The notes beneath the pieces were generated by a model. The model was not told where the DNA came from. It did no database searches and worked only from the letters and a program-made list of their open reading frames with translations. From the NCBI GenBank assembly GCA_021613535.1, contig CP075496.1, positions 6,076,001 to 6,140,000 on the forward strand: a stretch of DNA of 64,000 bases, written 5' to 3'. Every line of letters starts with the position of its first letter. The first letter of the stretch is position 1. Shown one piece after another: positions 11,844 through 56,323 of this stretch. The translations under genes were made by a program, and so were the position numbers. This stretch comes from Adineta vaga (lineage: Eukaryota > Animalia > Rotifera).

Positions 11844-12321
11844 ATTCTTATTGCAAAAGAATAAAAATAACAAATCAAACGAGAATGAAAACACAATAAT
11901 TCACAAAAAATAAAACTCAATTTTTTTTTCTTGCCAATGTTTAACATATTATTTTGTGTGTGTGTGTTTTTTCTCGTATTTATCGTTTTGCTAAAGAGAA
12001 ATTTTCCAGCACAAAATCTATAACAGTGAACATTGTTCAAAAACTGATTCATTCTTTGAAAAACAAAGCCTTTCGATTATAAATAAACAAAATTTTAGAA
12101 AAAGAACATCTGTATGCATTTGTATAGTGTGATTATGATTGTTTTGATCTTATTCCTTTATGTAATTCTTGTTTATGTTTTGATGTTCAAAGAAAAATAA
12201 CATGAATATATTATTTCCGTTCGTTGTTTTTTTTTCTAAATTTTATTGCCTAATTCAATAGACAAGAAAGAAAACAAAAAAAGATCCTGAGAGTTCATTT
12301 GCATGAGGAAATATTGCATTT

Positions 12322-13467: not shown

Positions 13468-14880
13468 AGTTTTGTAATTATTTACCGAATGTCGCGATTA
13501 ATAATAACATAATGACAAAAAACGTTGGCCTTTTATATTTGAAACAAAATAGAGAGGAAGTCAAAATGTATATACTTTAATGACGTACGCTCTTTTTCTG
13601 TCCTCAACAGGTCTCGTAACCTACGTGTCATAGAATAGCAAAAGTCGATATCTACAATCACGCGCCTATCAGCTATGAAAGTCAGACAAATAATCATAGC
13701 TATTTCACGCGTCGTATTAGTCGCCAAACCGATTGTCGGTAAATATGAGAAAAATATCATGTCTAAAATCTGTTAAATATATTGTTTATATCAGGACTGG
13801 GTACATATGCAGTTCCGTGCGTGATTTACGTTTTATTAGAACATGTGCCCTATACATTTGCAATATACATATATATTATACAGATGGTTTGATACAATGA
13901 AAAATACATTTTTTCCGTGCATGATTTATCGTTTATTTATTTTACGTTGTTCCCCATCATTCTTTTCACCTTTGACTAAAGTACGAAGGATATGTTTTTT
14001 ATATGTGAAAGAAAGAATAATTGACTATTTCCTGTTAATTCGAATGTAAATCAATGAAAAATATTGTATTCATAAATTTATCACATTGTCATCGTAGATT
14101 AAAATTTAATTTCGATCCGTTGATTTAAAAGATAAATAGACTATATCACATGTGATTTTTATTGAAAATCATGTTGGTTTATATCTTGTGGTTTACAATC
14201 AGCAGATTTTGATACTCATCGAGTAGTGTGAGTATATCATTCGTCATTATTCGACAGTTTGCACTAGATATTTGCATTGTCTTATTCTTTCGTGAAAAGA
14301 ACATATCAGTCCAGGATAAATAATTATTTTCAGAAACAAAACGAACGTTGAATAACAAAATCAAATAGATGAAGAGTCAATATGGAATATATTGTTTTAC
14401 AAAGAATAACAATGTGATTGTGTAGACATTAATTCTAAAACAGATGATGAGCAAATATAACAGTGAATATAGTTAAAGGAGGAGGAGGAGGAAATACGAG
14501 AGTAAAACTCATATTTTAAAGATAATCATTTGATTAACAATAAAAGAGTAGGTGAGTTAGCATGAAAGTTAACATTGATCGAGACAAATGTGCGTAGGAT
14601 AATGACTTTAGAAATGATCGAATGTCATCTTGAAATAGGTTAAATATTTCCTAAGAGTAAAGTTATGTATACAGATATAAATGAATAATCTATCAATACG
14701 AAACTCATGTTCAACTTATTCTCAAATAATCTCAATCTCTGATCATGAGAATTTGAAAATGATCTTATGACGAAAGTGTGAATATATCAAAAATTCATTC
14801 TTTATACTACTACAACAACAGATGATTGTCATTTACTGACATCTATGCAAATCTACATTATTTCGACTAGTTCAAACAAG

Positions 14881-14896
14881 GTTTCTCCATAGAAAC
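14881..14896. promoter_or_regulatory. Candidate RFX X-box upstream of FBF1-like gene
   Basis: GTTTCTCCATAGAAAC is an inverted repeat (GTTTCT/AGAAC-type arms) with a 13/14 match to RTHNYYWTRRNRAC. It lies ~85 bp upstream of the ATG of a ciliary gene. Confidence 0.5.
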
Positions 14897-14979
14897 TGAT
14901 ATGAATTATGAAGAAAAAGAATTCCTTCAAGCATTTTTCTGTCTTCTCTTCCTATGAATAATCCTTGAATTTAATCAAT

Positions 14980-17900
14980 ATGAGTAAGATCATCGACTTT
15001 TTCCTGAGAAAAGATATATTAAATATTATGTTTTTTTCTCAATTATCTCACTCATAGACAGATCAACATTCGATGATATTCTTCAAGACTTAAATATTGG
15101 CATTAACGGTAAAATATTTAACGTCTAAAAACATCAACCTTACTCATTCTTTTGTTTATTTAGATAATAAAACTACCACAAATACGAAAAATCAAAGAGC
15201 TAATTTTGATCCTGATGATGATTGGTTGGCTACTCCCAGAGTATAATATATTTAACTACGAAAAAATTAGATTGAGTTCATAGTGCATATATTACAGGAT
15301 ACAAAAAAATCGACTACAAACATTGCAGCATCACGACAAAATGATTCTGATGATTTAGATGTTGACGTTGATGATAAATGGAATCAAACAGGCGGTTCCA
15401 ATTTTTCCTATGTACCAAATTTTGGTGGTACTGGAACTTTGACCAATACATTCTCTGGTACGTAGAATTTCATGACATACCATCGATTCATACAACTCGA
15501 TTTTATTTAAATATCTTTATATTATGAGAATATCATTCGAAAATGCATACTTCGATCGAACTGATATTCTTTCACACGAAGGATCTTAAGAAAATTGATC
15601 AGAACGATGAATTGACAAGTACATATATAAAAATATATCTAAAAATTGTTTCGTATAATCAAGTTTTCTTTACATTATAAGTCGATATTTCATTGTTATA
15701 TCTGTAAATTTTTATTATAAACATTATAGCTCAAGGTCAAGATACAATACAACGTATTGTAAATCAACCTCGACCAGCAACATCAAGTGGTACTCGAAAA
15801 TATGACGATTTATTTGGAAGTAAATATTTAGACTATAGTTTTGCTTTACTAGACTTTCATTATAGCTTCACCGCCGAAAACTACTATGACAAGTGATATG
15901 GATAAAAATAAGAAAACAGTCCGGTACGTTTCGAAAAAGTTGTCTCATAGAAACTGTTCATTTACTTGTTTATAGTTTCGATGAAAATGATTCAACACGT
16001 CCAACAACTGCGCCACCATCTTCGGATTTATTACAACATCGATCTGGTACAGGAACTATAGCAACCATGCGTACTGGCCTTGAACCAAATAAATCATTCA
16101 GTATGTCATCTCCTAATAAACCAACAGCAACAACTGAATCGAATAATTCGAACGATTGGCTTGGTTTAAAAGATGAATCAAGTGACGAAGATGAATTTCC
16201 TATACGTCCACCGCAAAAAACAGAACCAGTTACTACTACTCTAGCAAAAAAGACACCTCTATTATCAGTTCCAGAACCACCACCGAAGAAATCAGTCTTA
16301 GATGATTTACTTAACGATGATCGACGAGCATTAACAGAAAAAACTCCTGTTGTACCAACAGTAACATCTAAAATAACATCTCAAAATCTTTGGTTTGATG
16401 ATGAAAAAATATCTGATAAACGTTCATCTACTGCTAATACACAGAAAACGTTATTGTTCCAAGATACTCAACAAAACAAGCCATCTACCAAGACTCCATT
16501 AGACTCAAAAACTGATTTCTGTAATTTCTTTATTTATAATGCAAAAAAACGTCATTTCATCACATTTCATTTCTTTAGCTAATATAACTTTTAAAGATTC
16601 AGGAAAAGACTCTCTTTTTACTAATGAATCACCAATCTCAACAGCAACTAGATCAAATTCATCAGCAGTCAATGTAAGTGAAATTGAAAATAAGAATTTT
16701 CTGTTCATCGTATCATCTCCTTGATCGTTTTAGCTTGATATGAAACGACTTGAATACGAAAATAACGAACTTCGTATGACATTGGATCATGTAAAACGAC
16801 AATATGAAGTTGAACGAACTATGCTTGAAGAAGGTTATAAACATCGAATTGAATATGTAGAAAAATCATGTGAAAGAAGAGAATCAAGGTAAGATATTAC
16901 TAGTGAACACGTAAAATTAATTAAATTATGAATTGTCACGTTAGATTCAAAGAAGAAAATGAACATTTACTTCGTCAAATCAATGATCGTACACAACAAT
17001 ATGAAAATGAAAAATCTGCATTACTACTGGATCATCAACGACGTTTAGATGAATTACAAAGAGATCGAACCATAGAATTAGAAAATCTTCGGACATTACA
17101 AAGGTTTGTATTCTTTTCAATCTTCCAAAAATATCTTAATATCTGTATGACTTTTTTTTCAGACAAAATCTTGATCATTTACGTAGAGAACATGACCAAG
17201 CAATTCAACGTTTAAAACAACTTAAACAAGAAGAAATGTCTACAGCATTTGATGTCACAACACATACCGAGGTATAAATGAATGAATTAGTTGAAAATCA
17301 TAATGATGAAATCTTTCTTTAGAGCATTTGAATCTGTTGTGGATCATATGGAACAAAATGCAAAAAATATTGATGAACTTCGACTTAAAATTGAAGCAAA
17401 ACACAGTTCAGCATTATCCGACAAAGAAATCGAAGCACGAGCTAAAGAACAACAACTAAAAGGTATAATAGATGCAAGTTAAGTGACTTGATAACAATAC
17501 TTTTTCTTTTCTTTTTTTTTCTCAAGCTTACGAAGAACGTTTACATATGCAATCGAATGATTTCGAACGTGAACGTAAAAATTTACAAGAGCTCATTGCT
17601 CGATTAGAAGTTCATCTTTCTGAACAAACAAAACTTGTTGAAGAAGTAAAATTTTCACATCCTTCTAGAAAATATTTCATTTTTTGTTTTAAGGAACGAT
17701 GGAAAGCTTTACAAGCTCAAAAACGTATGGAAGCAATGCAAGATGCTTTGAATGGAGAACAACGTTTATTTACAGAAAAAATTGCACGTGATCGTTCGGA
17801 AATTCAACGTGGAAAAGATCTATTACTTGAGGATCAAAAAGTTGCTCTTGCAAGTGTCTATGAAAGTCGATCACAATTGGCTAATGAACGTGCAAAAATC

Positions 17901-18990
17901 GAAGCATTACAAAAAACATTTCAAGAACAGAAACAACGCGATATGTTACAAGCTGCTACTGTAAAATAGTTGCACTCATTTGCATTGTTTTCTATTATTG
18001 GAAGATTCTTTTGTCTTAGGTCGAAGCCGAAGCTCGTGCTCAACAAAAAGTTCTCTCTGAACAAATGGCACGTTTAGATAAACGTGAACAAGAAATAATT
18101 AAACGTGAAGAAACATTACTTATTGAACGACGTTCATTAACTGAATTGAAACAACGAGTTGAGATTGAACAATCAACTGTTAAGAATGATTATGAAGAAA
18201 TAAAACAGAAATTGATTGATATTGAACATGCTAATGATGCGATTAGAAAAGAAAAAGAACGTTTATCTCAATTATATTTTGAATTACATGCATTAGATGG
18301 TAAAAATACAGGTCGACTTCAACAACTGCAACAATCGATTCAAACTCTACGACATCAAGAAGAACATATGAGCGAAGTAAATTTTCTGATTAAGTCACTT
18401 AAAATATTTGATTAACTAATTCGAATGCTTTCGTTATGTATGATTCATCTCAGTTTTTCGAATCATTTTTTCGATATATTACTACTGAAATGATAAGAAA
18501 CTTAATTTCTTGCTGAATGCCTTCTATTTCTAGCAATATTCTCGAATGGCTGACGAACGACCAAATCGCAATCATCTTCGTTCAAGTGTTACACTTAGTT
18601 CTCAATCACCATTGAAGGATACGGGTTTTTCCAGTAAGATATCAATTTATATTCAAACATTTTCATCTCTAAATCAATATTTCCAATTAGCTATGCAACT
18701 TGTTTCAGCAACACCACTTTTACCTACGACATCTTCTCAACAATCAATCGAAGAAAGTGTTGCTTTACGAACATTACGAATGAATGCGCTACAGGTACGT
18801 TAAAATTAAATAAATGATAAACTATTCTAGAAATAACTTTTTTTCTGCTTAGGACCAATTATATATTCAAGATGAAATGTCATTTCTTAGTAGTTTACGA
18901 GCGGGAAATCCTCTCTTATCACGTACCGGAGCAAGTCATGGCAATCTTCATCGACTTACTGATTACAATTTACTTAGGACCAATCATTAG
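14980..18990 (+). CDS. FBF1: Fas-binding factor 1 (FBF1/DYF-19)-like ciliary transition fibre coiled-coil protein
   Basis: Multi-exon gene with N-terminal 'STFDDILQDL', a low-complexity region with 'DWLGLKD', and a long coiled coil ('ERERKNLQELIARLEVHLSEQTKLVEEERWKA'). C-terminal 'ALQDQLYIQDEMSFLSSLR' resembles the FBF1 terminal motif. Some 5' exon boundaries are uncertain. Confidence 0.72.
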
Positions 18991-20274
18991 TTTGACAGTG
19001 GCTACTTTTTCTAATGTATTTATAGATGTTATTGAAAAAATAGAAAGAAAGAAAACTGAAACAATGAAATGAACTTTAATTACTTCTTCGTATTTTATTT
19101 TTATTTTCAAATTTCTCTGCTTTTTATAATAAGAATGTTTGATAAAATCCAGTATTGAATGGTAGACTGTGTCATACGAATAAGAATAGAAATAAATTAA
19201 AATGATGAAAAAATGTCGAAATGAATGTCTGTTTCATATAAAACATGTTGCTCGAGGTGAACTAATCAAAAGAAGAGAAAAAAGGTTCCTTATAAACAAA
19301 AATTATTTGACAAACAGACAACATTAGTTGATATTTTTGTTTAAAGTGCAGTAAGTATACTCTTTTCAGGGTTATGTAAGACTGTCCCATATACAGTAGA
19401 GTCTTATTATCTTGAGTTCGTCTCTTCTGTCAAAGAATCATGAAAAGTGTCATTTGTTGACTTTATGATAACATATAGATGTGTAATTCTATTAAATATG
19501 TCCTAATATATTACCACTACGTGGTTTAAAACATAACTGTGATAGTCGATTTTGTTCAAGTGAATATTAGTAAGTTTATTTTCGATACAAAAAAGCAAAA
19601 CAGAAAAGAGTCAAAGAAGAAGAAAATGCGGAATATCTACAAATATCTGTACAGTCTAATGTGAGTTTAGTATAAGGAATACTACTGCTATTCGATGACG
19701 ATTCATCGAAATATGTAACTATTCTACATGTAAACTTGATAAATTGTAATTTACAAAGAAAGAGAAAGAAAAGAACATATCGATTATTTTTGATACTCCA
19801 CAACATTCATACCATACATTCCCACATTATTCAAGATTGAAAACTATTTGTCGAAAATATAGTCCAACATAGTATTGAAATCTAGGTAGCTTTACTCTGT
19901 GCGCATTGCGAGATTCCACGTGTGATTTGAATCACGTTTCTTCTTATTTATTTATTATAGAGTGAAAGAAAAGAAGAAAAAAAATGAATGGACACTAGTG
20001 ACGCCGAAGAGAAAAACACCAACAAAAGAAAGAAACAAGAAATATTCATAGAGAACAGATTAAAATCAAACTATTCGACCACGAAATAAATAATGTGATG
20101 TAGTTTTATTTATTGCATTTCATTCAGATGATTTTTCGAAAAAGAATTATAATAAATTGATGCAAGGTATTTATTCTATAGTAGAACAATAGTTTTTAAG
20201 CATATTGATATTTTCAAGTGATTAAATTAACCAACGATTATGATTTTTTCTATTTTAGGCGATAATTGCCTTCA

Positions 20275-23200
20275 ATGTCTGCAAATCCCGAGGATATTTC
20301 TGAAAAACGAACAGTTTCGCAGAAGTAAGTAATTCAATCACAAAGATATTTTAATTTAAATAATTCCATAATAAAGATATCGAATCGAATAAAAGATCTT
20401 CTATTTTATAAGTTTTATAAAACCACATACTTATCCATTTAGTCGCTCTTGTTAATTGTTTCAAAATTGTATTTTATGATGAATTTTCTTACTAAAAAAT
20501 GCATTTCACTAATGAGTTTCATATATCTGTACTTGAAAGAATGATCTAATTTGAGCAATCAGGAAATAGTCGAGTATTTTATTTCATAGCTTGAACGCTC
20601 ACAATTGTACTAATTTTAATGCAGATTAGAGAGAATAGTGTGAACAGAGATCTATAAGCGCACGCAATACGACAACATATTCTTACAATATGTGCTGTAT
20701 TATGTCAATGTAAGTTAACCAACATCAAAATGATTAAGAAAGTTTTTGCAGAAAGAAGGAAAATAGTGTATATCACTTTTCTATTTGAGACATTCTTTAT
20801 GTAGTTAAATTAATAGATGTAATATTTCTAGGCGAAACTTGTTCGAATATTTATTTATCAAATTCAATACTTTTTATGAAAATATCTTTTCAACAATCGG
20901 TAGACAACTTGGTCATCGACCATTCATATTCATTTTACTATCCTTTACTTTAACTGGTCTATGTTCATTGGGTTTCCTACGTTCAAAGATGATTAATAAT
21001 GCTGATGTTCTCTTTATTCCAACTGATGCTAGAAGTATTCGTGATCGTGAAATAGTCATGAAGAAATTACCAATGAATTATGATGATTATTATCTTCATC
21101 AAGATTATGATCTAGGTATATTTGGTGATGTCATTTTTCTAACAGGAAATTATGGAAATATTCGTCGTCTAAATATTCGTAATGAATTAAAACGTATTTA
21201 TACATTAATACAAAATATAAATGTTACATATGGTAATTCGACATATTTCTATAAAGATCTTTGTGCCAAGCGAGAAAATCGATGTGTAACTGAAGGTGAT
21301 ATTTTTTTTCGTGAATCATTTTGGCAACGTTTACGAGATAAAGAATTACAAAATCATATTGTTAATGATCTCTATACAGATGATGAGGGTGAATCGAATT
21401 ATTTACCATTTATATTTGGAAAAAATCTAACGAAAGATTTCGAAAAGCAGACATTTTTTGCACGAGTATTGAAATTACGTTTTAATTTACGAAGAACATC
21501 GATCATTAATGGGAAAATAGTCGATATAGAAATGATTAGTCGAATGTGGGAACAAGCTTTTTTACAATTCTTCGAACATTTTCATTCAATTATGGTTCAA
21601 GCTATATATTGTGTATCAACATCGATCGATCAAGAATTAGAAAAAAATATTCATCTAGGTAAGAAAATGATCGACTAGAATGTAATTTCTTCTATTGATT
21701 ATACTTCATGTATAGATTTGATGTTGGTTGTTCTCACATTTGTTGTTATGATTATTGTGGCAACAATTTGCTTGTCAATACGTAGTCCATTTGCTCAATC
21801 ACCAGTTTATTTATCTGGTGCAGGTGTTCTAGCAACGATGCTTGGATTAGTATCTGGTTTTGGATTTTGTCTATTAGTTGGCATACCAATGTGTTCGTTA
21901 GTATTTGTGACACCATTTTTAGTTATCGGTAAGATAGATGTTGGTTTTATATGCTATGTATACAAGAGAATAAATGATTAGGTGTGGGTACGGATGATAT
22001 GTTTTTAATTTATTCGGCATATCGACGAACGAAATCATCGGAAACAACTGTACAAAGATTAGCGGAAACATTTCGTATATGTGGATCGGGTATAACAATA
22101 ACATCATTGACAAATGTGATTGCTTTTCTTGCTGGAGCAACAACGAATTTTTATGGAATACGTCTATTTTGTTTTTATACAAGTAAGCAAATCTCACATA
22201 AATATAGAAAGTTAAAAAACTTAATATATTTATCTTTTATCTCTAGGCGCTTCACTTGCTTTTTGTTATATCTATCAAATAACATTATTTGGTAGTACGA
22301 TTGCTTTGTACAATGATTGTATAAATAATAATCGACATACTGTCATCCTATGTTAACTGATCGCACATCATCAGCAACTAGTCCGAAAAGTCGCCGCCGT
22401 AATCGTCAACAATGTTTACCATTAAAAGGAATGTTTATATACATTACAAAACCATTATTTACAACATTTGGTCAAATTATAGTCTGTTCAATCTTTATTA
22501 TCTATACAATATTTGCTATTTATGGAGCATTACAAATGCGAGATGGAATGAAATTAGGACAATTGTTAAATGATCAATCATATGCGAAACTATATTTTGA
22601 TACATTAGATAAAGAATTTGATATTCATCCGTTAGTACAATTTATTATTACGGAACCAATTCCGTATTGGAGACATTCTTATATGAAACAGATCAAAGAT
22701 TTTATCACAAATGCTAAACAAATGAAAGGTAAACATACAGAAATCAAATTTGTTCTTCAGAAAATCTTAAAAACAATTTTTAGGTATGGATGAAAAATTT
22801 GAAATTTCTTGGTTTACCTTATTAGATTATACGGGATATGAACATCCATTAGATAATGGAACATTTTTTATAGACAAAATTCATGGTTTTGTAAATTTAT
22901 TTCCTCCATTTGCTAATGATTTAGTATTTAATCAAACTCATCTATTAACTAGTCGGTTTTATTTAAAATTCGGACATGTTCATTACAATTCACATGATGG
23001 ACATTTAGTTAATCAATTACGTGCACTTGCTGAACAATCAAAACTACCAATCAAAGGTAGGAGAATTTCTGTTCATTACGTACGTTTTTTTTAATACTAA
23101 TTCTATTCCTTCAGAGTTGCTAAGAGATTTAGTTGATCTTAATAATAATTCAAATAAAAATTTCATCTATTTTGTTTAGTTTACAGTAGTCTTTTCAAAT

Positions 23201-42446: not shown

Positions 42447-42882
42447 TTCGAACATCTTTAGTCAGATTCTTTTCATTAATGTACAAACGAAAGAATGGTG
42501 CTCAAAAGACTTACAATAGATAATTATCAATCGTAGTAATTTATCAAGAAAAGAAAACACTCAAGATTTGACATTAATTCCATTGGAATCTCAGTTTCAT
42601 TTCTCTTTTCAGTTGAATGTCAGATTTGTGTTGTATGTGTGTGCACATAGATATCCTTTTTTTTCTGTTTTCTTCTTGTTGTTATTATTATTATATTATT
42701 TCGCCATTTGTTTTAGTGTGTCATATTTAATTGATGTTGTATAATTCTAGGAAATTTGTTTTTTTTGCATTATAACCATTATTTATTTGTCTTCTAGATT
42801 GAGTTTCGATTTTCATTAATGATTGTAAAGGTAAATGGTATTCATCGACAGTTTAATTAGAATGAATGCTATTTGAATTCTT

Positions 42883-44208
42883 ATGGCTGAAAAACAGAAA
42901 CGTGTAAAAAACTATTCATCTTTACAACAATTAATGGATGAACAAAATCAAAATTTCAATTCTCATTGCCAACGACCGATTCCTTTTTCAATCAATCATT
43001 TAACTTCATCAACTCCAATTTCAAATAAACGACGTTGTTCTCCTATTATTCACGAACCAATTGATCTGTTCTCAAATAATCAACATTCAATATACAATCA
43101 ATATCTTCCCCCGATATCGACAAGAACGACAACAACAACAACAACAACAGCGACAACAAATCGAAAGCGATCTCTAGAAGATGATTCTCATATTCAATCT
43201 TCTAATCCATATATAAAACGAACACGATATGAACATAATATTGAATTAGAAAATCAGCCACCATCTACAGCAATAAAACGTCGTTCTCTATTTCTATATC
43301 ATCCAGGACAAGATTGGAATCATTTACAAATGCAAAATGACTTCCCATCTTTCTCCAATCCATCGATACCATCATTATCAACTACACATGAATATGAACA
43401 AAATCTATCGAATCAATTTTTTCCTTCAAATTTACATACGGAACATTTCACAAATTCACATTTACATATGTTTGGAAACGATTCATTGATTACTTCTGGT
43501 CACAAAGGTAAGTGTATAGCTAACAGTTTGATTGTTTTATCACTAATATCCTCCAAGATATTAATTGAGTAGTTTTACGCTGAGCAAAACCATTAAAATT
43601 CCTTCTATGATAGCAAATAAATTGTTCTTTGAATTTTAGATACCTTTCCAAAATCAACAAAGAATACAGTTACAAATAATATACGTTTATTTTCACCACA
43701 ATCAAATATTACTAGTCCATTACGTACTACAAACTTCGTTGTTGATAGCAAACAACAAGCAATGAGTGCAACAATAATGCGAACAGGAAATATCTCACCC
43801 GCTCATTCAGATACTTCAACTGAATCAACATCCACATGTTCATCGGATGAACAACAATTTCATTTAAATTTTCCATCATTTCATTATCAACCATCACGTT
43901 CCTATCGTGAACGTGAAAACTATGAACAGTTATTGGATCTAGCAGAAAAATTATCCGATCCAAATCGTTTTAATTCAGTGGACATTGAACAATTCTCTTC
44001 CTATCGTTATAAATCAACAATAACAGCAGAAATTTTATCTTCAAAACAAACAGCTTGTGTTATATGTATGTCTCATTTTAAAACTAATCAACGTATTCGT
44101 AAACTTCCATGTCAACATGAATATCATTCCAAATGTATTGCAAGATGGTTTACAATGAATTCATCATGTCCTATATGTCGACGAGATAATTTTTTCTCAA
44201 CTTGTTGA
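42883..44208 (+). CDS. RNF38/RNF44-like RING-H2 E3 ubiquitin ligase
   Basis: Exons 42883-43507 and ~43640-44208. 'ENYEQLLDLAEKL...DIEQFSSYRY' precedes the C3H2C3 RING 'CVIC...CQHEYHSKC...CPIC'. Confidence 0.85.
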
Positions 44209-44986
44209 TCCTTACATACATAACTCGACACATTAATTGAAAGTTCTTCGTTTTTCGTTTTCATTTATGTACAACAGTAAAAATGTTTTATATACTTATA
44301 ATATTAACAACTTACAAGAAAAAACAAAATTTGTCAATGTTTGTCTTGTTTCCTCTTCAATCTTTTTCTCTTCTCTCTTTTATGTATGTATGCTTTTTTT
44401 TCTATGTAAGTATATTTTTCTTAAGAAAAAAAAATTAATCATCAGCTAAACATGTTTCTCTGAGGTCACTTTTAAAAATGAAGTTTCTTCTTGTACTTTC
44501 GAAGTTTTTTTATTAATAGCATTAGTACGTGATGCTTTACAACGATTTTAACCTGAAGGGAAAAGAAAAACTAGACTGTTCAAGTGAAGGAAGAGAGAAT
44601 ATCGACAAAAAAAAGATAGCCTAGGTCCATTTCCATTGCAAGCAAAAGAAGAAGAGAAAAACTACGGACAGAACGAAAAAGAATCGACTGTATAATTAAG
44701 AGGGGAAAAAAGACACGACGAACATCGTTCTCGCCCATGTTCCTATTTTTTTCTCTCTCTCTCTCGCTCGTTTTCATTCTGTGAAAAAAAATTTTTCTTC
44801 ACACATTCGCTTGTTCTGAACGAACAAACGTCTGCTCTTCACATTCAGAGAAAGCACATAATATTCATACAGTCGTCGTCACGAAGTAGGTCTGCTGCTT
44901 ATTTTTTTTATTTATTTATAATGAACAAACATATATACACAAATAGATTTCATACAATTATTCGTGCCGTTTTTCTTTCTTTCTAG

Positions 44987-46893
44987 ATGATGACACGAAA
45001 AGATAATAATATGAATCCTAGCTCTCAATCATTGAGTATGTTAAATGAAAACAAAACTAGAGTTTATTTTTAGTAAAGAATTTGATGATTGTTTAGATTA
45101 TAACACCTATTCAGCATTTGGTCATGATTATCATCATCATAATCCTTGGGAAAAGCCGAATTATTCAACATTTGCGTATCAACAAACGCCGTATACAATT
45201 GGAATGCTATCTTCTACCGGTGGTTTAATAAATAAATCCAGTGATTCTCATTTACCATTTGATATCACATCGAATCTTAATCATTCAACTTCAAGTTTTT
45301 ATAGACGTCATAGTATGTAAAGAATTAGTTTCGTGTAATACGGTATTTAACAATATTCTTCTTTCAGCTGAATCAGCCTTGCCAACATCGACCTCAATTT
45401 ATTCCTCATCCACAACGAATCATTCATCATCGAATCCATTTCATTACTCACATATGCCAACAAATTATCATCCATCGGAATTATTTTTTGGATGGAATAA
45501 TGGACCATCGCTAATGCGTACACATAGTGCTTCTTATCATGATTATCCACAATCAAGTAATTTTCATTAGTCTTTCTTTCTAAACGAAGATAGTAAAACG
45601 AGTTGATTCAAGTTAACTAAGTCAAAAATCTATTTATTGTTCTACTTTGCATCATATCGATCATGACTGACAAATATGCAATGATTTAGAGGGACTGTTA
45701 TTTGCTTTAATAAAATATTGTACATGGCAAATCATGCTGTTGATAAGTGTGTTCGTATATGGTTTCAGTTCGAAGAATATAGATTATACATTACAATTTC
45801 TATTGACTGATCCCTTAGGAATCTAAGCTGACGAGAGCTTCGAAATATGATTGCTAGCCGGAATTCTCTTCTCGTTAAAATGAACAAATAGTGTAAGGAT
45901 TAAGAGACAGAGAACGAGAGAAAGGATAAGTTTTCATATTCAAGAGGAAAATTGCTATTCAAGTACTACTCGTCTAATCTATCCATTAGCAAAACTCAAA
46001 TATTTATAGATTAATCGAGAACATTTCTCATGAAATGATAACGTATTTAGATCCTTTATAGACAAATCTGTAGGTGTTCCATAATTTATTTATGTACAAA
46101 TATTTCAGCTCCATTTCCACACTACAATCCAACCGGTTCTTCAATTTCGCAATCAACAATAAATACCAAATCAGCCGAGATTCGATCAACTGCACAACCA
46201 ATAAATACACCTTTAAACCATAATTATTCTCCGTTTCTAAATATTCTTCCACCAATACACTTTTCTCTACCACCATTACCACCTACTATTGTTCCTTCGA
46301 AATCCAAACGTTCTATTCCAACCAGCAAAAGACGTCCTCGTGTAACTCCTCGACTACGTTATGAAATTCTTAAATTAAAAGCTAATAAACCCACGATGTT
46401 CGTTTGGGAAATTCAGCAAACTTTATTAGAAAATGGTATTTGCACCAGTCAAACATTACCAAATGTAAATTTTAACTTTTTGTTTATATTTCGTTTTAAA
46501 TCAATATTGTTTTTTCATTAGACAACAACGATTCAACGTATTCTTAATGAATCTCCAACATTTAGTACTATTATCAAAGATGAATATCAATCCCACTCAG
46601 ATTTAGCAATATCAACAACATTGAATGATACTGTTGAAACAAAAACTTCCTCATCATCATCATCATCATCAGTTACAATTTGTTTATCTCCGTCACAATC
46701 TGATACTGAATCCACATCTGAATGTTCAATTTGTCTTGAAACATACCGTAGTGGACAAGAAGTTAGTATTCTTTCATGTTCCCATGAATATCATTCGTCA
46801 TGTATAAAAGAATGGATGATGAAAAATCGTTCATGTCCAATGTGTCGAAAAGATATTCATAATCAACCACAATTTGTTACTTTACTCATTTGA
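44987..46893 (+). CDS. Chimeric protein: low-complexity N-terminus + paired-domain RED subdomain + RING-H2
   Basis: Manual splicing (44987-~45035, ~45079-45311, 45368-45556, 46109-46464, 46522-46893) keeps one frame. RED-like 'RPRVTPRLRYEILKLKANKPTMFVWEIQQTLLENGICTSQTLPN|TTTIQRIL'. RING-H2 'CSIC...CSHEYHSSC...CPMC'. The first exon junction is least certain. Confidence 0.8.
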
Positions 46894-49800
46894 TTTGTTA
46901 ATGATTTATTTTTGTCTGTTGTTGTTTTTTTTCTTCCTTCTCATTCATTTTCTCGCTCATTTTTCCATTGTAAATACGAATGTGTATGAATATAGCATTC
47001 TATTCAAAGCAAAATTATGAATTTCTACGGATAATTTTTGTAATCTGAAGATTCAAATGCGTATATATTGAATGTTTGGTTGGTTTTTCATGTAAAAATT
47101 TTGCAAAAAAGAAAACTAACTTCAGAATGAAGGGGAAATTAGTTTCTGAAAAGAGGAAAATGAAGTAATATAATAAACTTTGCGTTTTATATGAAGAAGA
47201 ATAATATAATAAATTCTAAGATATGTTTCAAAGGAAGAAACATAAAAATTTCAATAAAGTCCATGATTCAAAAGTTGCTCAATGCTTAGAAATAGAATTA
47301 AAGAAGTTTTACGATAATTCTACAAAGAAGATTGAAATGATTTCCTTGAATTGTAAACAAAAAACAACAACAAAAAATCATGAAAAAAATCAAAAGTACA
47401 GATAACCTGAGTTCTCCTATATAATCTGAATGTTAATGATTCTAAATGTTTTCTAGCTATTTTAAATCGTTTTTAATTTTCTCTGTAAGTTCCTGAATAT
47501 CTCATGGAAACGGTTGATGTTTTACATAAAAGTCAGTTTCTTTTCCTCCTGGTCAGTGTTTATGAATTGTCGCTTTCTACAAATGAATGAGTGAAAATGA
47601 TTAATAAGATGTTAACCTCTATCAAATCTACATGTAAATTCTCACTAAATTTTACACATACAATTAGTAATTTAGATAATAATGTTTCATCAGAACCCGC
47701 TGTTTTCCTAAAGCTAATCATGATAAAATAAGGTGTCGGAGTTTTAAAACTAGCGACTATTCTAAAAAAAAGTACTTAATTGAAATTAATTAAATATTTC
47801 TACATCGTATTTCGATGCATTAACTATAAAAGGTTAAAAGATCATCTACGATCTGAACGATAAATAAATCATTGAAAGTATAGTTTCAGTTGTAGAATGA
47901 ATAGTTCGATATAAATTGACTAAAAAATAAAAATCAGGTCATTTTAGAGCAAACGTCAAATGAACTATTTTTCAGTTGAAAAAAGTCATTAATCATTTAA
48001 ATAGAATGTATTTCATGATAATATCTTGAGTTAAAAAAAGATCTGATAAAAACGAACGGTTTTATTCATGATAAATAAACAAGAAAGAAGTATATTAATC
48101 ATACTCTATTAGTATTTTATGATATTTATAGAAATATAAAATGATGAGAAATAGAATCACTCAAGTAGAATAATGGATTGCAAAGAAATAAACTATGATT
48201 TTCATGTTGTAATATTTACATAATTGAAACAAGTTTTCTTCGTAATTAGAAAAGATTTTATTTCATTACTATTCTAATAAACATCTACAAAATAGTTAAT
48301 TTGATCTATAGAAATAGTACTGTTTTGTTTTGTTTTGTTTTGTTCTTTTTGTAATCGAAAATATTAAAGAAAAACATGACTTTTTTATGTACCCAAATCA
48401 AGTAAAACATATCAGGCATTATCATAGGAGATTTTCAAGTAATACGATGAAGGAAAAAAATCAGTTTGATTATATTTCTTTACCAGAGAAATTATACATT
48501 TGATGTCGAAAGAATTTGTTGAAAATATATTAATACAAAAATAGTTAATCATCAAGGACAAGTTCCACAAAAGTTCTTTCACTTGTTATAGTTCGATGAA
48601 TTAATTGTACGGAATCATTTTGGCTTTTATTTGTTATCTACGCTTGAAATACATAGAATGTAAAATCTTAATGTATATCAATTTCCGTCTTAAATGTCTT
48701 TAAATAATATCATCCATGCGAAACTAAATCTCTTTGTTTTCTATAATTCTAAAGTTAGATAAAGAAAGAAAATGCAGGAAAGACTAATGGATGAAAATGG
48801 AGATAGTTTTGTTTTATTAGAATAGTCCTTTTTCCCGTTATTTATATAGTTATTATTTGAGTACCATTCTATTTAGTTTTATCTTTACAAAACTATCGAC
48901 AATCTAGGTAAGTAAAGTTTAATAGCCTAAAGCGAATCTTCAAAAATACAAAGCTGAAGACGATTGTCATCTTCCGCTCATTTCGTTAGTTTTCTCTTTT
49001 CTTGTATCGTAGTCAATTGTCGATTCTCTTCTTATAAATTTATGTACTCGTTTCTCTCTGTCTTTCTGATTGTGCGACCAATTGTATTGTCATCAATCGG
49101 ATCAGATCATATTCGTTCCAGTGAACACACTCTAATGAGAAGATGAATGACATTTGAATTCTGATTTTATTCGATATTTGTCTGTCTATTAATATTCAAA
49201 ACTTTTCGTTTGATACTTCGATTTTTAATTTCAACAAATAAGAAAGAAAGAGAGAGAGAAAATTTACTTTATAAAGTACGCCAATGTCAATGCATGTTTT
49301 TATCATACTAAATCAATCAGATCTTTGATTGAAGATGTGTGATGTGTATATGGCAAGCGTTCATCTTGTCGGTCCCTTATTTTATCATTAATGTTCGACA
49401 CTGATTGCGATCTTTCTCTCTTTGTCCTATTAAAGAGTGTATGTGTGTGTGTGAGCGTACATTTTTTTTGTCGTCGCTCAATAATGATAAGTTCTTTGTA
49501 ATTAGCTACATACATACATACACACACTATCTCCTTTTTCTTTCCTATTGATAGGCATAGGGCAGACATGCAGAGGCCCTAAAGGAATGCAATACTAATT
49601 TTACTTTGATCATTTTAGCGGAATAACTGACGGTGACAGCGACAAGCAAGAACAAGGCAAATTACATTGCGTTAACACCTCGTCCTTTTCTTTCTTGCTC
49701 GTTGTCTGTTGTATTTTTTGAACATCATCAATGAATTGTTGACGAGATTTTCTTGGACTATGAAAAAGTGCTCGAGAAAGGAAGATAAGAGAGAGAGCGA

Positions 49801-51167
49801 GCGAGAGAAAATCTATTTCGTAGGCGGACATCATTACGCTTGAATGCTGATCAACCTCATCAGGATGAGTGCAGAAGCACGAAGCTTTTTTCCGACATGT
49901 GTATGTCTCTTTTCTAATTTCGAAGTCTAGTTAGTGTAAATGTATGTCGGTTCTTGTGAACAGAAGAAAAGAAAACCAATAGAAATAACATTTGTCCTGC
50001 TTTCTTCTAGTTGTTTTTATTCTATCTGTTATATATTGTAACGATTGTTAATCAGATGGAAATGAAGATAATTACGGAAAAGAAGGAAGAAAAAGATTGA
50101 CTAAAAACTATCCTCATTATCAGAAGAATGTGTACCTGCTGTGTTTGATCAATGATATACAATATTTATTCTGATGAGAGACGAAAATGATAATTGTTTA
50201 GATCAAACTACACTTGTTTATGGCGTCAACTAATCAAGAACGATGTATTTATTTAATTGCACCTGCTGTTTCTAATGATCAAGAAGAAGAGAGATGTATA
50301 CACTAGAGGATTTCAGAATCTTTCGGCTATTTAATAACAATAATAGAGAAACATTGGGCAAAGAAAATATTGATATTTATGGGAGAAATAAAGCAAGCGA
50401 GATAGAATGTAATGAGCGTAATAAATGGAAATTTTCATGATTTTTCTACAATAATGACCGTTACCCTAAAGAAATACCCTTTAAAGGTTTCTGTCGTTTT
50501 ATTAAATTTTTCAAATAAAAGAAAAGTCGACAAAACATCATGTTTTCGTCTAATAAAAGAATACATATGAGTTATCATCAAAAGTGCATTCTGTTAATAG
50601 AAACAGATATTTCTTTGAATTTAGAAGGTATCTTTTGTTATGTAAATCTACTAAACAAAAATATACAAATATCTATTAGATAGATGAGAAAACATATTTC
50701 AAATAATCAAATGATTATTTCATCTTAAGAGTATTTAGATTCAATCCAATCAGTTGTGTTTCTTTTAATCCTAATTTTTTTCGATTGTTGTTGACTTTCT
50801 CATTTGGCGACAATAACAAACGGATCGTTTTCTTTTTCTTTTGTTTTTCTTTTTAATTAAAAACTTCGAGGCGTCGTATGTATTTCTTTTCATTCTCTTT
50901 TTCTTCGTGTCCGAGAATATCAAGCATGGATATATACAGAGACATCAGGAGAATATAAAACGATTTAATACCGACTTGACAAATGTCATAAGATCTTTTC
51001 ATGCAGAAATTATGAGATGATAATAACCGACGAAAAATAATTGTCGTTCTTTTTCTTCCGTTGGGAATTGGCACTGCTGACCAATGTCCTTGTCTAACTA
51101 TGTGTGTAATCAGGCATAATTTCTCTCTTGGTGGTCAGTAATAAGTCTCAATGAATAGAAGACGGAA

Positions 51168-51236
51168 GAAGCAGAAGCAGAAGCAGAAGCAGAAGCAGAA
51201 GCAGAAGCAGAAGAAGAAGAAGAAGAAGAAGAAGAA
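51168..51236 (+). repeat. Compound microsatellite (GAAGCA)7(GAA)9
   Basis: Read directly from the sequence upstream of Pax6. Confidence 0.9.
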
Positions 51237-51759
51237 GGAATCTTAGATTCAGGTAGACGAAGGAAAAAAAGAAAAAGAATAGCAAACTAAAAATAAGCAA
51301 CCAATCATTAAACGACCCGAGAAGAAAAAGAAATCATCCAACCAATGATTAATTTGTTCTCTTCTTTTCTTCGCCTACTTGATTGCAACAAAGTGCTTAG
51401 GCGTCGTCGTTGTCGATATGACTGACAGAAATGAAAAGAGAAAAAAAAGGTAGCCAGTCAGAAGAGAGGAAGACGAATATGTTAATTCGAGCAGAAAAAA
51501 TGAAGAGAAAAAAGAAAAGAAAAAGACCGACAAACAATCGGATTTGCTGCCGGTAGAGTTTCTTATGGCATTTTTTCTCTTCATCGCTCGCTCTCTTTCC
51601 CTCTTCCTCTCTCTCTCTCACTCTGTCTTATCCTTTCGCGATCTATTTCTCTTTTTCTTGTCGTTATACGCTTGCCCGATTTTTCTCTTGTATATGTGTT
51701 TTGTCTCGATGCTTTCAGTTGTAAGCGCACAAATCGAGCGTTCACACGAGGCTAACTAA

Positions 51760-51836
51760 CCGAATCCGTGCGAGCGTTGTCCGCCCGCCCGCCCGTGTGT
51801 GATCCGAAACAAGTTCCAACCCACTGAACTGTAAGT
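51760..51836 (+). promoter_or_regulatory. GC-rich promoter / non-coding first exon of Pax6
   Basis: Locally GC-rich island with CCGCCCGCCCGCCC, ending in a consensus donor GTAAGT at 51831. Two CCAAT boxes lie near 51301 and 51342. Confidence 0.45.
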
Positions 51837-52237
51837 TGTTACTAATATTCTCAATATAAAAAAAAGGAAAATCAAGAGGAAAAAAGAAAAGGAACGGAAA
51901 ATGTATTTTTCAAAGATAATCAAGATATTCGATTGTATCCTTAGATTTCTTCCTTCTTTTTTTTCGGATTGTTTTATTGAAAAGAAAACATACGCCCCAA
52001 TGAATGACTGTTGATGATCAATAAATATATGATTCAATGAACATTAAATATATAGTTGAATAAATCACAATTAGAGAAATAGAGTCATAGAAGAAGAAGA
52101 AAAAAAACGACAGACCAAAGCAGACATTCAGATAAGATTAGTTTGAAAACATGTCGGGGTAAATAAAATTTGTTCGAAATCTATCTTTTCATTTGTACAT
52201 TATTGTTTTTTCTTGTTCATTCTAGTTCACCGATACA

Positions 52238-54745
52238 ATGGATATTCATAATGATCTATCAATGTCTCATAAAGGTTAGTTATCCTTACTTGAGTAGAAG
52301 ATCAAACATAAGGAGTGAAATATAAAAAAACATGCCCGTGAGGATATTGTTTATATATTTAACAATTTCATTTATTCCAATACAGATATCGTTAGAAGAA
52401 ACATGTTATTGTTGTTGTTTTGATAAGAAATTAGAATGTGATCAATCACCGCCGGTGATCACAATCTTATACGGTGCAATGCATTTCAAGTGTTTTTACT
52501 GTTCCCTTCTTCATCTACTTTTTTTTCTTCTTCAAATACTAATATTAATCATGAATATGCAATGAGAAATCTATATGTATATATGTATATTTTTCTAGGA
52601 CATTCAGGAGTTAATCAACTTGGAGGTTTATTTGTTAATGGTCGACCATTACCGGATAGTACACGAACACGTATAGTCGAACTAGCTCATAATGGCATGC
52701 GTCCATGTGATATTAGTCGATGTTTACAAGTGTCGAATGGTTGCGTATCAAAAATTTTAGCACGATATTATGAAACAGGTTCAATTAAACCACGCGCAAT
52801 TGGTGGTTCGAAACCTCGTGTAGCAACCAATGATGTTGTACAGAAAATAGCTCAATATAAACGCGAAACACCATCAATCTTTGCTTGGGAAATACGAGAT
52901 CGTCTTTTAGCTGAAAATGTTTGTAATTCGGAAAATATTCCAAGTGTACGTATCAGACAGCAGAAAAAAAGACACCCATATCTATTGAATGAAAATTTTC
53001 AATATTTAGGTTTCATCAATTAATCGAGTCTTAAGAAATCTTGGTTCGAAATCAATGGATTCAATGACCAATCATGAAACATACTATTCTGTGGATAGTA
53101 AATTACGTGTTTTACATAGTCAACCATGGCCATCATCATCCTCATCATTCTATGCTCATCCTCCTGGTACACAACCATCATCAGCAACATATTCAACAAG
53201 TGGAGATTCAAATTCGGAATATAAACATCAAGGAAATGATGGAAATCATGGACATCATCAAGATTTAGGAGGTAAGAAAAAAGAGCAAAGCATTACTAGA
53301 TTGTCTTTTTGAACAACATTCCGATACTTATTTCCATTCGAATTCTTTACTAACAGCTCAGATTGAAGTAGGTTCGGCAAGTGTTTGATTTCGAACTATG
53401 CTCTATTTAATAAATAGACCACCTGTAGATGAGACGATCGATTGATTAAAAATAAACTGCTCATGCCCTCAGGATACAGAATCTCTTTTTCCTTGAAGAC
53501 AAAAAAACATAACAAAATGATATTCCTATTCTCGATTCGTGTAATTATTCCATGAATCTGATTGGTGGAAATTCTAAAGAAGAAGGAAAAAAAACTTGTC
53601 ACTATTTTACAGATGTTCAATCTTTTCTAATCCGTAGTTTTCCACATCGTTGATTAACATTGTTTTTCTCCATTGAAATGTGAACGATAAGAAGAAAAGA
53701 AAAGATTTTTTTTCTTTTGTCTTTAGATTTATCTGATGCAAGTAATGATAGCAAATCAGCAATACGAGATAGTTTAAATGAGAATGAAGAAGCTGTACAA
53801 GAACGATTGAAATTAAAACGTAAATTACAACGGAATCGAACATCATTTACTCAAGAACAAATCGATGCTTTAGAGCAAGGTATTTTATAGGACAAAAAAA
53901 ATGGCTTGTTTCTAAAAGAATTTATTTTATAGCTTTTAATGGAACACATTATCCGGATGTTTACGCACGAGAAAAACTGGCACAAAAAATTAATTTACCT
54001 GAAGCAAGAATTCAAGTAAGACAGTGTATTGAAATAAAAATAGAATTCCATGATAATTAACTATAGGTCTGGTTTTCTAATCGTCGAGCTAAATATCGTC
54101 GAGAAGATAAAGTTAAAGGCCGACGTCAACATCAACAATTAATGAATGATATGGGAGAAAATCTTCGTCCATCAGGTTCAACACCACCTCTTCCAACATC
54201 TCAACAAACTCAACCATCATCTTCGTCAGTTTCACTCTATCCGCCCGTACTTCCAAATAATGATCAACATCTTCATCATCATCATCATCATCAATATGGA
54301 GCATTTAGTTCAGGTTTTACTGGACAAATGGCTGCAGCTGTTGCATGTAGTTCAACAGGATATCCAACTTTTTTTCCTAGTAAGTTATCTCATCATGATA
54401 ATTCAATTGTATTCCAATATGAATGTCTATACCCTGAAGAGATCTTTTCGTGTTATATAGAAAATAATTGACACATAACTCAATTTGTTTTTTTTCTAAT
54501 AGATTCAACACGTGGCTATGACGGACTAAGTCCATTTAGCACACCTTATAATCGTTCTTGTCCAAATTATTCAACAGGTATATCAACTAATCTCTCATCA
54601 GGTATAAAAAAAATATATTTTATTCATCATATCATATTGATTAACACAATCACACTCTTTAGATTTAGATCATATGAAAAATATGCCGTCAATGTCATCT
54701 TATGGTGGTGCACCACATATTTGGTATTCCCCAATCTTACCATAG
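52238..54745 (+). CDS. Pax6: Paired box protein Pax6 (paired domain + S50 homeodomain)
   Basis: Paired domain '[23 protein letters not shown]...[12 protein letters not shown]...NIPS|[10 protein letters not shown]'. Linker '[12 protein letters not shown]' resembles MYDKLRMLNGQ. Homeodomain '[17 protein letters not shown]...[13 protein letters not shown]...IQ|VWFSNRRAK'. Intron positions are Pax6-typical. Confidence 0.96.
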
Positions 54746-55408: not shown

Positions 55409-56323
55409 ATGCATGAAATAAAAAGGATTCAAAATCTTCATTGTAAAAAATGTCAAAGTTCTTTTCACCATGAAGAAAATGTGGCTTTTTTCAAACAAAA
55501 TCAATATCATTTTCATTGTTTCCTTTGTATTAATTGTCAAAAACAACTTTCACATGAATCATTTTATCATGATGAACAATTTCAATTCGATGTATTCTAT
55601 AATAAAACAATGAAAAAAAAATGATTTGCGATATATTTCTATGATTTAGATATCAAATCCACAAATTTATTGTGAAACATGTTATCTCCAACGATGTCCA
55701 TTATGTTCTCATTGTCATCAGAATTTTACTCCAACATCGATCATTATTGAATTACAAGGGAAAATTTATCATAATGAATGGTAAAATAATATAAAACATG
55801 TTTAAATAGACGAAATATATGATTTTAATGTAGTTTTATCTGTTCAAAATGTCAATTACCGTTACGAAATGAAATCTTTTACTCGAAAAATAAGTTTTTC
55901 TATTGTCATCAATGTATGACTCAACAAGAACCATGTTTATTGACTTTAAAATCTATGCAATTATTAAATGAACAATGTAAAATATGTGGCAAGAATTTTC
56001 TTTCTGGTGAACCAATTTCTATGTATTATGAAGATTATTATCATACGGATTGTTTTCGTTGTGTAAATTGTCAAACTCTTCTCATTAATCAAGGTTTTTA
56101 TCAGAACGAGAATGGATATCTCTCTTGTTCGAATTGTCATACTGATCATGGTTTACATTGTAGAATTTGTAAAGAACCATTTTTAACTGGAGAAATTCTC
56201 AGTCAATTTGATGATAGATATTTTCATCAGACATGTTTTCTATGTAACGTTTGTAAACAATCGATAGAAATGAAAAGATTTCAATATGAAAATGGAAAAG
56301 TAGTGTGTGAGAAGTGTTTTTAA
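55409..56323 (+). CDS. LIM-only protein with four LIM domains
   Basis: Exons 55409-55591, 55650-55780, 55834-56323 give four CxxC...HxxCFxCxxC...CxxC units. Confidence 0.85.

Follow-up and report, generated by a model that had tools for sequence, protein, structure and literature searches.

The RED-RING gene and its transcript

The subject of this study is a gene in a stretch of 64,000 nucleotides (nt) of the bdelloid rotifer Adineta vaga, referred to here as the window (positions 6076001-6140000 of contig C4 in a genome of 100.8 Mb and six contigs; positions without a contig name are those of the window). The window has a G+C content of ~30% and introns of 55-60 nt. The gene, which we call the RED-RING gene, joins the coding sequence of a RED subdomain, the C-terminal half of a paired domain, to that of a RING-H2 finger and lies, as had been predicted from the letters of the window, between a second RING-H2 gene and a Pax6-class gene. 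Paired domains are, to our knowledge, almost confined to Pax transcription factors. The RED-RING gene is a real, transcribed, single gene of five exons at 44987-46893 on the plus strand, and its product has 393 residues. Its structure and expression, the identities of its two domains, its conservation and the purifying selection on it can be regarded as established with little room for doubt.

Assembled contigs from three RNA-like runs of three different studies (X1, X5 and X7) and from one DNA-like run (X11) were aligned to positions 42600-47500. The GT..AG joint 46464>46522, which unites the RED and RING exons, was carried by contigs of X1, X5 and X7, in agreement with the original prediction that 46109-46464 and 46522-46893 are exons that splice in frame. 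Joints between the upstream exons were found as well: 45035>45097 in X1 contigs, 45312>45368 in contigs of X1, X5 and X7, and 45556>46109 in contigs of X1 and X5, so that the first intron according to the RNA joints occupies 45036-45096. The contigs of the DNA-like run read straight across every intron. Joining the five exons gives an uninterrupted frame of 393 codons that is identical, residue for residue, to the database entry 'hypothetical protein I4U23_018948 [Adineta vaga]' (P0040). Exons were joined by script for this frame check, for the C1 row (exons 4 and 5) of the substitution-rate alignment described below, and for the BLASTP comparison of the upstream RING gene with P0040. None of the contigs of the RNA runs covers the whole mRNA; their coverage is interrupted at 46148-46200, a stretch with three heterozygous sites. 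RNA depth is zero past ~47209 and also at 44568-44731, and because of this latter gap the transcript of the RED-RING gene is separate from that of the upstream RING gene. The parts of the gene are as follows.

44987-45035 (+): exon 1, with the start codon (MMTRKDNNMN...) and a phase-1 end; X1 joint 45035>45097, frame identical to P0040
45097-45312 (+): exon 2, predicted disordered, with conserved motifs NPWEKP and FYRRH(TES); RNA joints, alignment, no Pfam family, predicted local distance difference test score (pLDDT) <50
45368-45556 (+): exon 3, predicted disordered, with conserved motif FFGWNNGxSLMRTHSAS; RNA joints, alignment
46109-46464 (+): exon 4, 356 nt, phase-1 start and phase-0 end; Pfam PAX match and profile match to PAX6 residues 71-128 in the PDB; the first ~73 codons are of low complexity, the last ~46 (46330-46464) encode the basic linker arm and RED helices 4 and 5
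46465-46521 (+): RED intron, 57 nt, phase 0, GT..AG, in the place conserved among Pax genes, after ..LP[SN] and before helix 6; its position is shared by every family member examined
46522-46554 (+): start of exon 5, RED recognition helix 6 (TTTIQRILNES), with I274, R276 and L278 invariant
46555-46722 (+): Ser-rich linker, predicted disordered (pLDDT <50), ending in the conserved VTICLSPS...S-D/E directly before the RING
46723-46845 (+): RING-H2 finger, C338-C378, in which the eight C3H2C3 ligands, Ile340, Trp368 and Pro376 are all invariant
46846-46893 (+): C-terminal tail and stop, RKDIHNQPQFVTLLI; R379 is invariant and the tail is identical in most family members and highly conserved elsewhere, Didymodactylos carnosus and the sequence P0053 differing at a few residues
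46894-47209 (+): 3′ untranslated region; the RNA contigs stop at about 47165-47209

Contigs of X1, X7 and X11, the DNA-like run thus included, depart from the window upstream of 45077, where they have the loose end ..CAATTACAACAAAAACTTCG, and further loose contig ends are found at 43878 and 46899. The loose ends at these three places could be the other haplotype, the ohnologous copy of the gene on contig C1 described below, or a structural variant.

Identity and fold of the RED subdomain

Profile searches were carried out with single exons first and then with the database protein P0040. The exon at 46111-46464 alone matched Pfam PAX (PF00292) with E 8.3e-8 and 32.7 bits (cut-off 22) over profile positions 66-115 of 125, and residues 215-300 of P0040, in which helix 6 is included, raised the match to E 3.8e-11 and 43.4 bits over positions 66-124. 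PAX was the sole family above the cut-off for these residues, the runner-up being HTH_32 at E 0.09. When the profile of a family of 16 members (see below) was compared with solved structures, only paired domains were returned, with PAX6 as the best match (6pax, E 1.4e-14, residues 71-128), and with PAX8 (3e-12), PAX5 (1.3e-11) and Prd (3.8e-10) behind it. The AlphaFold2 model of the RED region consists of three helices with block pLDDT values of 86-92. It superposes on 6pax with a root-mean-square deviation of 1.7 Å over 56 columns and on Pax5 with one of 0.5-0.6 Å, and the top five Foldseek matches are Pax6, Pax5 (two chains), Pax8 and Prd, with E values for Pax proteins of 8.6e-4 to 5.7e-2. 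In the model of the full-length protein RED alone is folded with confidence; disorder is predicted for residues 1-225 and for the linker between RED and RING.

Paired domains and the helix-turn-helix domains of Tc1/mariner transposases are distant relatives, and the segment could in principle have come from a transposase of this type instead of a Pax gene. Tc3 transposase and SETMAR do occur in the Foldseek results, only at E >2 and far down the list (2.4 for Tc3), whereas the Pax proteins head it. In addition, PAX alone exceeds the Pfam cut-off, and the segment shares with Pax genes a phase-0 intron that is specific to them. The transposase origin is therefore rejected, and we assign it a negligible probability. 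A grouping of RED with a transposase or with a Pax class other than Pax6, either of which would have spoken against a local origin of the segment, was not what we found, PAX6 being the best match.

The original prediction had aligned the segment by hand to the RED subdomain of the Pax6 gene nearby, counting 19 identities in 54 positions. BLASTP of the RED region against the paired exon of that gene gave nearly the same figure, 20 identities in 52 positions with E 1e-9, which is a low identity of about 38-40%. The residues of RED that are invariant in the family alignment are R229, T231, E237, I238, P246, F249, W251, E252, I253, Q254, Q255, L257, C263, Q266, P269, I274, R276 and L278. Mapped on PAX6, helix 6 has a variable position in place of S121 and keeps R125 as the invariant Arg276. 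N124 of PAX6 corresponds to Gln275 in 15 of the 16 members and to His in Didymodactylos, and R128 to Asn279 in most members, Arg being kept only in Didymodactylos. The basic arm SKRSIPxxKRRPR is the homologue of the minor-groove linker GGSKPRVAT; it has been kept and is even more basic, and a hand count of the charges in RED gives a net value of ~+6. The KRRPR portion of the arm also looks like a nuclear localisation signal.

The prediction that neither a PAI subdomain nor a homeodomain is present was also upheld. No remnant of PAI was detected upstream of paired-domain position 72 when exon 4 of the family was compared by hhalign with Pax paired domains in local and global mode, and the local alignment spans positions 72-116 only. 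The Pfam match is likewise confined to profile positions 66-124 of 125, so that only the RED half of the bipartite paired domain (PAI and RED) is there. Pfam found no homeodomain in any part of P0040 or of the family protein P0034, and the precomputed Pfam lists contain PAX and RING families only. In the N-terminal 224-320 residues there was no further Pfam domain, and AlphaFold2 predicts disorder there. RED and RING are the only domains recognised in the protein, most of which is predicted to be disordered. Because PAI and homeodomain were both looked for and are both absent, the RED-RING protein is not a Pax family member.

The RING-H2 finger and other conserved parts

The exon at 46522-46890 matched Pfam zf-RING_2 with E 2.4e-14, so that both of the profiles proposed beforehand as a check on the gene, PAX and zf-RING_2, give significant matches. 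The RING is intact, as had been stated: none of the ligands C338, C341, C356, H358, H361, C364, C375 and C378 varies among the 16 sequences, and their C3H2C3 spacing is canonical. In complexes of RING fingers with E2 ubiquitin-conjugating enzymes, roles are played by the Ile after the first Cys, the central Trp, the Pro of the CPxC motif and the Arg after the last Cys. The putative E2-contact residues I340, W368 and P376 of the RED-RING protein, together with R379, are invariant and align with their equivalents in Arkadia and ZNRF3. The nearest solved RINGs are those of the active RING-H2 ligases ZNRF3, Arkadia, RLIM, RNF126, RNF165 and RNF38.

Outside the two domains, the motifs YRRHTE, SLMRTHSAS and VTICLSPS are conserved across the family within parts that are predicted to be disordered. 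The VTICL core, with the Ser/Asp/Glu stretch that precedes the RING, resembles by eye a phosphorylation-dependent SUMO-interacting motif; SUMO-targeted ubiquitin ligases of the RNF4/Arkadia type have SUMO-interacting motifs ahead of their C-terminal RING. The tail QPQFVTLLI is the same in most members and specific to the RED-RING family; a hydrophobic, conserved tail of this kind is reminiscent of those found in dimeric C-terminal RINGs, for example RNF4.

A conserved gene family of bdelloid rotifers

A second, intact copy of the gene is present on contig C1. This ohnologue is 56% identical in exon 4 and 79% identical in exon 5, and has the same five-exon structure, intron position and neighbours. 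Relatives were sought by an exhaustive HMMER search with exon 4 and by word-indexed searches whose queries were P0001, residues 305-390 of P0034 and the profile of the family. Proteins with both PAX and RING matches were named from A. vaga, A. ricciae, A. steineri, Rotaria socialis, R. sordida, Rotaria sp. Silwood1, Rotaria sp. Silwood2 and Didymodactylos carnosus, the last with two copies, and proteins from metagenomes and read assemblies (Logan, ENA, JGI) also match the family. In the protein searches there was no named match outside Bdelloidea, the genomes of monogononts, seisonids and acanthocephalans lying outside the direct search. In public sets the proteins are labelled 'unnamed protein product' or 'RING-type domain-containing protein' and carry automatic Pfam matches to PAX and RING. 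The RED-RING gene family is thus found so far only in bdelloid rotifers and is present in all named bdelloid genomes. The Pax-RING fusion that had been proposed for this one locus is therefore not a private chimera but a conserved bdelloid family.

The five-exon structure and the intron phases are common to Adineta (A. vaga and A. ricciae) and Rotaria, and exon 4 measures 326-362 nt in these genera, always 2 mod 3. Didymodactylos has the PAX and RING architecture and the RED intron at the same codon, and for A. steineri the support concerns the architecture alone.

Selection was measured as the ratio of nonsynonymous to synonymous substitution rates (dN/dS) by the Nei-Gojobori method, using unsaturated pairs only. 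The 57 RED codons gave values of 0.165, 0.164, 0.09 and 0.152, the RING with the tail 0.077, 0.017, 0 and 0, and the flanking low-complexity parts 0.14-0.30. Eleven variants were seen in the gene among A. vaga reads: the sole one in RED is synonymous (Pro246), none falls in the RING, and all of the seven that are nonsynonymous lie in disordered segments.

These results bear on the possibility that the gene is an artefact, whether a pair of distinct genes, a pseudogene or a likeness to a helix-turn-helix domain that arose by chance. The only observation in its favour is the low identity to Pax6. RED and RING are, however, spliced together in RNA of three studies, both ohnologues and at least 7 named species have an unbroken reading frame, purifying selection is clear, and the profile match to PAX6 has an E value of 1.4e-14. 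We consider that RNA joints, intact reading frames, dN/dS values and profile match together rule out explanations of this sort, and hardly any probability attaches to them.

Neighbouring genes and synteny

The two genes that flank the RED-RING gene have the following coordinates.

42883-44208 (+): upstream RING-H2 gene, two exons, 397 residues, with an RNA-supported intron at 43506-43637; a separate gene
52599-53069 (+): downstream Pax6-class gene; the span given covers the paired exon 52599-52945 (347 nt, phase-1 start), the intron 52946-53009 and the beginning of the exon that follows

For the upstream gene Pfam shows RING families only, and the description 'RNF38-like' that it had been given applies to its RING only. 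That RING is the closest paralogue in the genome of the RING of the RED-RING gene (E 5.8e-13 and 1.8e-11; next best 1.9e-10). In the BLASTP comparison of the upstream gene with P0040 the RING alone matches, at 48% identity over 44 residues, and the motif HEYHS.CI, already noticed in the original prediction, is common to both. The intron of the upstream gene is seen as the joint 43505>43638 in X5 and X7, whereas X1 has 43506>43640 and one additional A, a difference that could be allelic or could reflect the use of alternative splice sites.

The paired exon of the downstream gene matches Pfam PAX with E 9.3e-64 and scores best against human PAX6 (213.5 bits, compared with 196 for PAX5), and a paired-type homeodomain, which is divided among exons, begins near 53830. 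Its intron at 52946-53009 is in phase 0 and lies at the codon homologous to that of the RED-RING intron at 46465-46521, exactly as had been claimed. An intron after ..LP[SN] is also present in a second Pax6-class pair on contigs C2 and C5 and in a gene on C1 with RED and a homeodomain, and is missing from three other Pax types of A. vaga.

The three genes follow one another on a single strand, in the order RING gene, RED-RING gene, Pax6, on A. vaga C4 and C1 and in A. ricciae. Because the C1 copy likewise has a RING gene on its upstream side and a Pax6 paralogue on its downstream side, C1 and C4 look like ohnologous segments. The same order is seen in Rotaria, but with a DEAD-box helicase gene interposed before Pax6. 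This helicase interval spans 11909-17025, 11909-16878 and 12296-20783 in three Rotaria loci (L028, L029 and L032, respectively), and the equivalent gap in A. vaga, window 46894-52598 (5.7 kb), contains no long open reading frame. The order recurs in part on a 3.3-Mb ENA contig. In Didymodactylos a RING gene lies upstream, and no Pax gene is found within the 9 kb left before the contig end. The check on synteny and selection suggested with the original prediction thus yields a gene order conserved in Adineta and Rotaria and purifying selection on both RED and RING. Downstream of Pax6, at window 55409-56323 (+), there are open reading frames rich in C-x2-C...H-x2-C pairs, for example CKICGKNF...HTDCFRCVNCQ, which by this pattern look like LIM-domain exons.

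Other Pax genes in the genome

The second Pax6-class pair is located at C2:3565382-3566660 and C5:13878767-13879225 and has a paired domain in three exons, the same ..LPS| intron and a Pax6-type homeodomain. A third match to PF00292 that covers RED only (31.9 bits) lies at C1:15136956-15137730 (~4457-5230, plus strand, of locus L034). In this gene an exon ending in ..IFEYKRENPSIVGWEIRNRLSKEMNCKLEDFLS is followed by an intron at the Pax position and then by VLSINEVLKNL, and the downstream exons encode a paired-type homeodomain (..HYPDLFEREEVALELNVSEPRIQ / WFYNRRMKYRE); the PF00292 search gave no PAI match nearby. This layout of RED and homeodomain is eyegone-like; the gene is very divergent and possibly decaying. 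Conversely, matches of PF00292 to the PAI half only (profile positions 1-75/85 and 1-83) occur at C2:9761712-9761936, C5:8845120-8845374, C5:8929950-8930248 and C2:10017631-10017914, and the same search listed no RED match near any of these four loci. The A. vaga genome therefore seems to hold several genes with half a paired domain.

Origin of the RED-RING gene

The RED subdomain is very probably of Pax6-class origin. Its descent from the adjacent Pax6 gene in particular, as was envisaged in the original prediction, has in our judgement an even chance or slightly less. In general terms, the 5′ paired-domain part of a Pax6-class gene would have been captured by the 3′ RING part of a RING gene; the capture would predate the bdelloid genome duplication, and the PAI half would have been lost afterwards. 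A tandem duplication with breakpoints inside both neighbours would produce a chimera of the 5′ part of the downstream gene and the 3′ part of the upstream gene, situated between two intact parents. Several observations fit this duplication model: the position and orientation of the RED-RING gene; the placement of linker and RED in a single exon, which lacks the additional introns found in the C2/C5 gene; the phases of exon 4 (1->0) and its length of 326-362 nt, compared with 347 nt for the paired exon of Pax6; and the finding that the neighbour's RING is the nearest RING in the genome.

The sequence of RED, in contrast, favours the C2/C5 pair, whose RED is the best match in the genome to the profile of the RED-RING family. 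The profile scores 45.7 and 43.1 bits on the C5 and C2 Pax6-like genes, respectively, against 35.5 and 32.1 bits on the neighbouring Pax6 genes. In a RED tree of 46 columns the family is monophyletic (100/98), has a long stem of 0.96 substitutions/site and stands beside the C2/C5 pair (91/79). A tree constrained to make the family the sister of the neighbouring Pax6 is 3.2 log-likelihood units worse and is not rejected (approximately unbiased test, p-AU 0.073). The phylogeny that had been called for thus supports a single family of Pax6 class and leaves its place among the Pax6-class genes unsettled. Gene order, intron phases and the nearest RING speak for the local-origin model, and RED sequence and tree speak against it. 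No parent of exons 1-3 was found in the window: tblastn, with E values of up to 50 allowed, gave chance matches only, including those upstream of Pax6.

Proposed function

The RED-RING protein is most likely a nuclear E3 ubiquitin ligase that its RED subdomain targets to DNA or to homeodomain partners. The RING would recruit a charged E2 (UbcH5-type E2~Ub) and act as a ubiquitin ligase, and RED, the sole candidate for such a role, would be the targeting module. RED subdomains are able to bind DNA independently (PMC3174178). The basic arm and the retained arginine of helix 6 most likely still bind DNA, and the altered residues of helix 6 suggest a specificity unlike that of Pax6. Placed on chromatin, such a ligase would have as its substrates proteins that occupy RED sites or their vicinity. 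We favour DNA binding with altered specificity because the basic arm is retained, the equivalent of R125 is kept, and the helix-6 contacts have changed.

Several points weigh against this interpretation. N124 of PAX6 is reported to make a contact in the major groove and the substitution S121L to abolish binding (PMC7056646), and R128 is placed at the DNA interface (PMC3945805). Of these interface positions both Asn124 and Arg128 are changed in most family members, so that DNA binding may be altered or lost. An isolated RED without PAI or homeodomain may be a weak DNA binder, and RED has been documented as a protein-binding surface for the MH1 domain of Smad3 (PMC1807973). In the full-length AlphaFold2 model the RING is poorly modelled (pLDDT 40-56), with no zinc and a shallow alignment. 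Finally, the roles of ligase and of DNA binder are ones that we infer.

The same changes in helix 6 are consistent with a different role, in which RED has been repurposed as a substrate receptor for paired-class homeodomains, possibly that of Pax6, or for MH1 domains of the Smad type. The RING would then ubiquitinate these proteins, and DNA binding would not be needed. The paired domain of Pax6 is reported to bind homeodomain proteins, among them the homeodomain of Pax6 itself (PMC3174178, citing Bruun 2005 and Mikkola 2001), and its RED sub-domain is bound by the MH1 domain of Smad3 (PMC1807973). The replacement of N124 and R128 in most members, while the residues that form the fold are invariant, and the conserved linkage to Pax6 would also agree with a receptor. 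However, the basic arm and Arg276, the equivalent of R125, are invariant, as DNA binding would predict, and the linkage may be a relic of the gene's origin with no bearing on its function. We regard a receptor that dispenses with DNA binding as improbable, and as the main rival of the DNA-targeted ligase.

Eyegone and Pax6(5a) are RED-only Pax proteins that work through the RED subdomain, and the RED-RING protein might similarly be a competitor at RED-type (Pax6-5a or eyegone-like) sites, with the RING as a structural or dimerisation module instead of a ligase. Sites of the 5a type are on record (PMC3945805). This explanation is hard to reconcile with the low dN/dS (0-0.08) of the RING, which with its E2-contact positions is under stronger constraint than any other part of the protein, and it appears very improbable to us. 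That the strongest constraint falls on the RING, with Ile340, Trp368, Pro376 and Arg379 invariant, fits catalysis.

Returning to a ligase targeted by RED, its most specific form would be a chimera of the adjacent RING gene and Pax6, retained beside Pax6 from a time before the bdelloid genome duplication, in which RED still recognises Pax6-type (5a/RED) sites or the Pax6 homeodomain and the ligase acts directly on Pax6 or on proteins at its targets. This we think unlikely, and the regulation of Pax6 or its targets by the RED-RING protein, as suggested in the original prediction, is speculation. The broader statement, that bdelloids have a five-exon RED-RING family with a DNA-targeted ubiquitin ligase mechanism and an origin by capture from a Pax6-class gene, seems to us somewhat more probable than its opposite.

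Comparison with known systems

No description of a paired-domain-RING protein was found in the literature, as the original prediction had supposed. What is described here is a putative RING ligase with a candidate targeting domain that is absent from the papers found; it forms a lineage-specific family, and its proteins are already in public databases. In all named bdelloid genomes purifying selection has preserved half a paired domain within a putative RING ligase. Should the gene indeed have been born as a chimera of two neighbours, it would be a clean case, because both candidate parents still flank it, and should the chimera act on Pax6 or its targets, bdelloids would have a lineage-specific ubiquitin ligase for them.

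The closest counterpart of the targeting domain is the RED subdomain of Pax6 (PDB 6PAX), the best solved match by sequence and by fold. Both consist of a linker arm and a three-helix helix-turn-helix, aligned to PAX6 71-128, and share the core P-x-x-F-x-WEI, LL, C, P and I-x-R-x-L and the phase-0 intron at the same codon. Unlike Pax6, the RED-RING protein is without PAI, homeodomain and octapeptide, and its RED differs from that of Pax6 by a one-residue deletion in helix 4, by WEIQQxLL in place of WEIRDRLL and, in most members, by Q/H for N124 and N for R128. As in eyegone, twin-of-eyegone and Pax6(5a), in which PAI is missing or disabled, function would rest on RED alone; those proteins, however, are transcription factors with a paired-type homeodomain, whereas the RED-RING protein ends in a RING. 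The gene is also a natural test of what an isolated RED is capable of, which bears on the biology of Pax6(5a) and eyegone.

With the C-terminal RING-H2 ligases Arkadia/RNF111, RNF165, RNF38, RLIM and ZNRF3, the protein shares the C3H2C3 spacing, the Ile behind the first Cys, the Trp of the central helix and CPxCR with its Arg behind the last Cys, and, as in these ligases, its RING is near the C-terminus behind long disordered regions. The similarity to these ligases is confined to the RING, however, and they contain no fragment of a paired domain. MSL2, with its CXC domain, and UHRF1, with its SRA domain, combine a nucleic-acid-binding module and a RING in one polypeptide, the arrangement proposed for the RED-RING protein, and do so with unrelated DNA-binding folds. 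If RED still reads DNA, the RED-RING protein would be a rare natural example of a sequence-reading module of the transcription-factor type that is wired directly to ubiquitin transfer.

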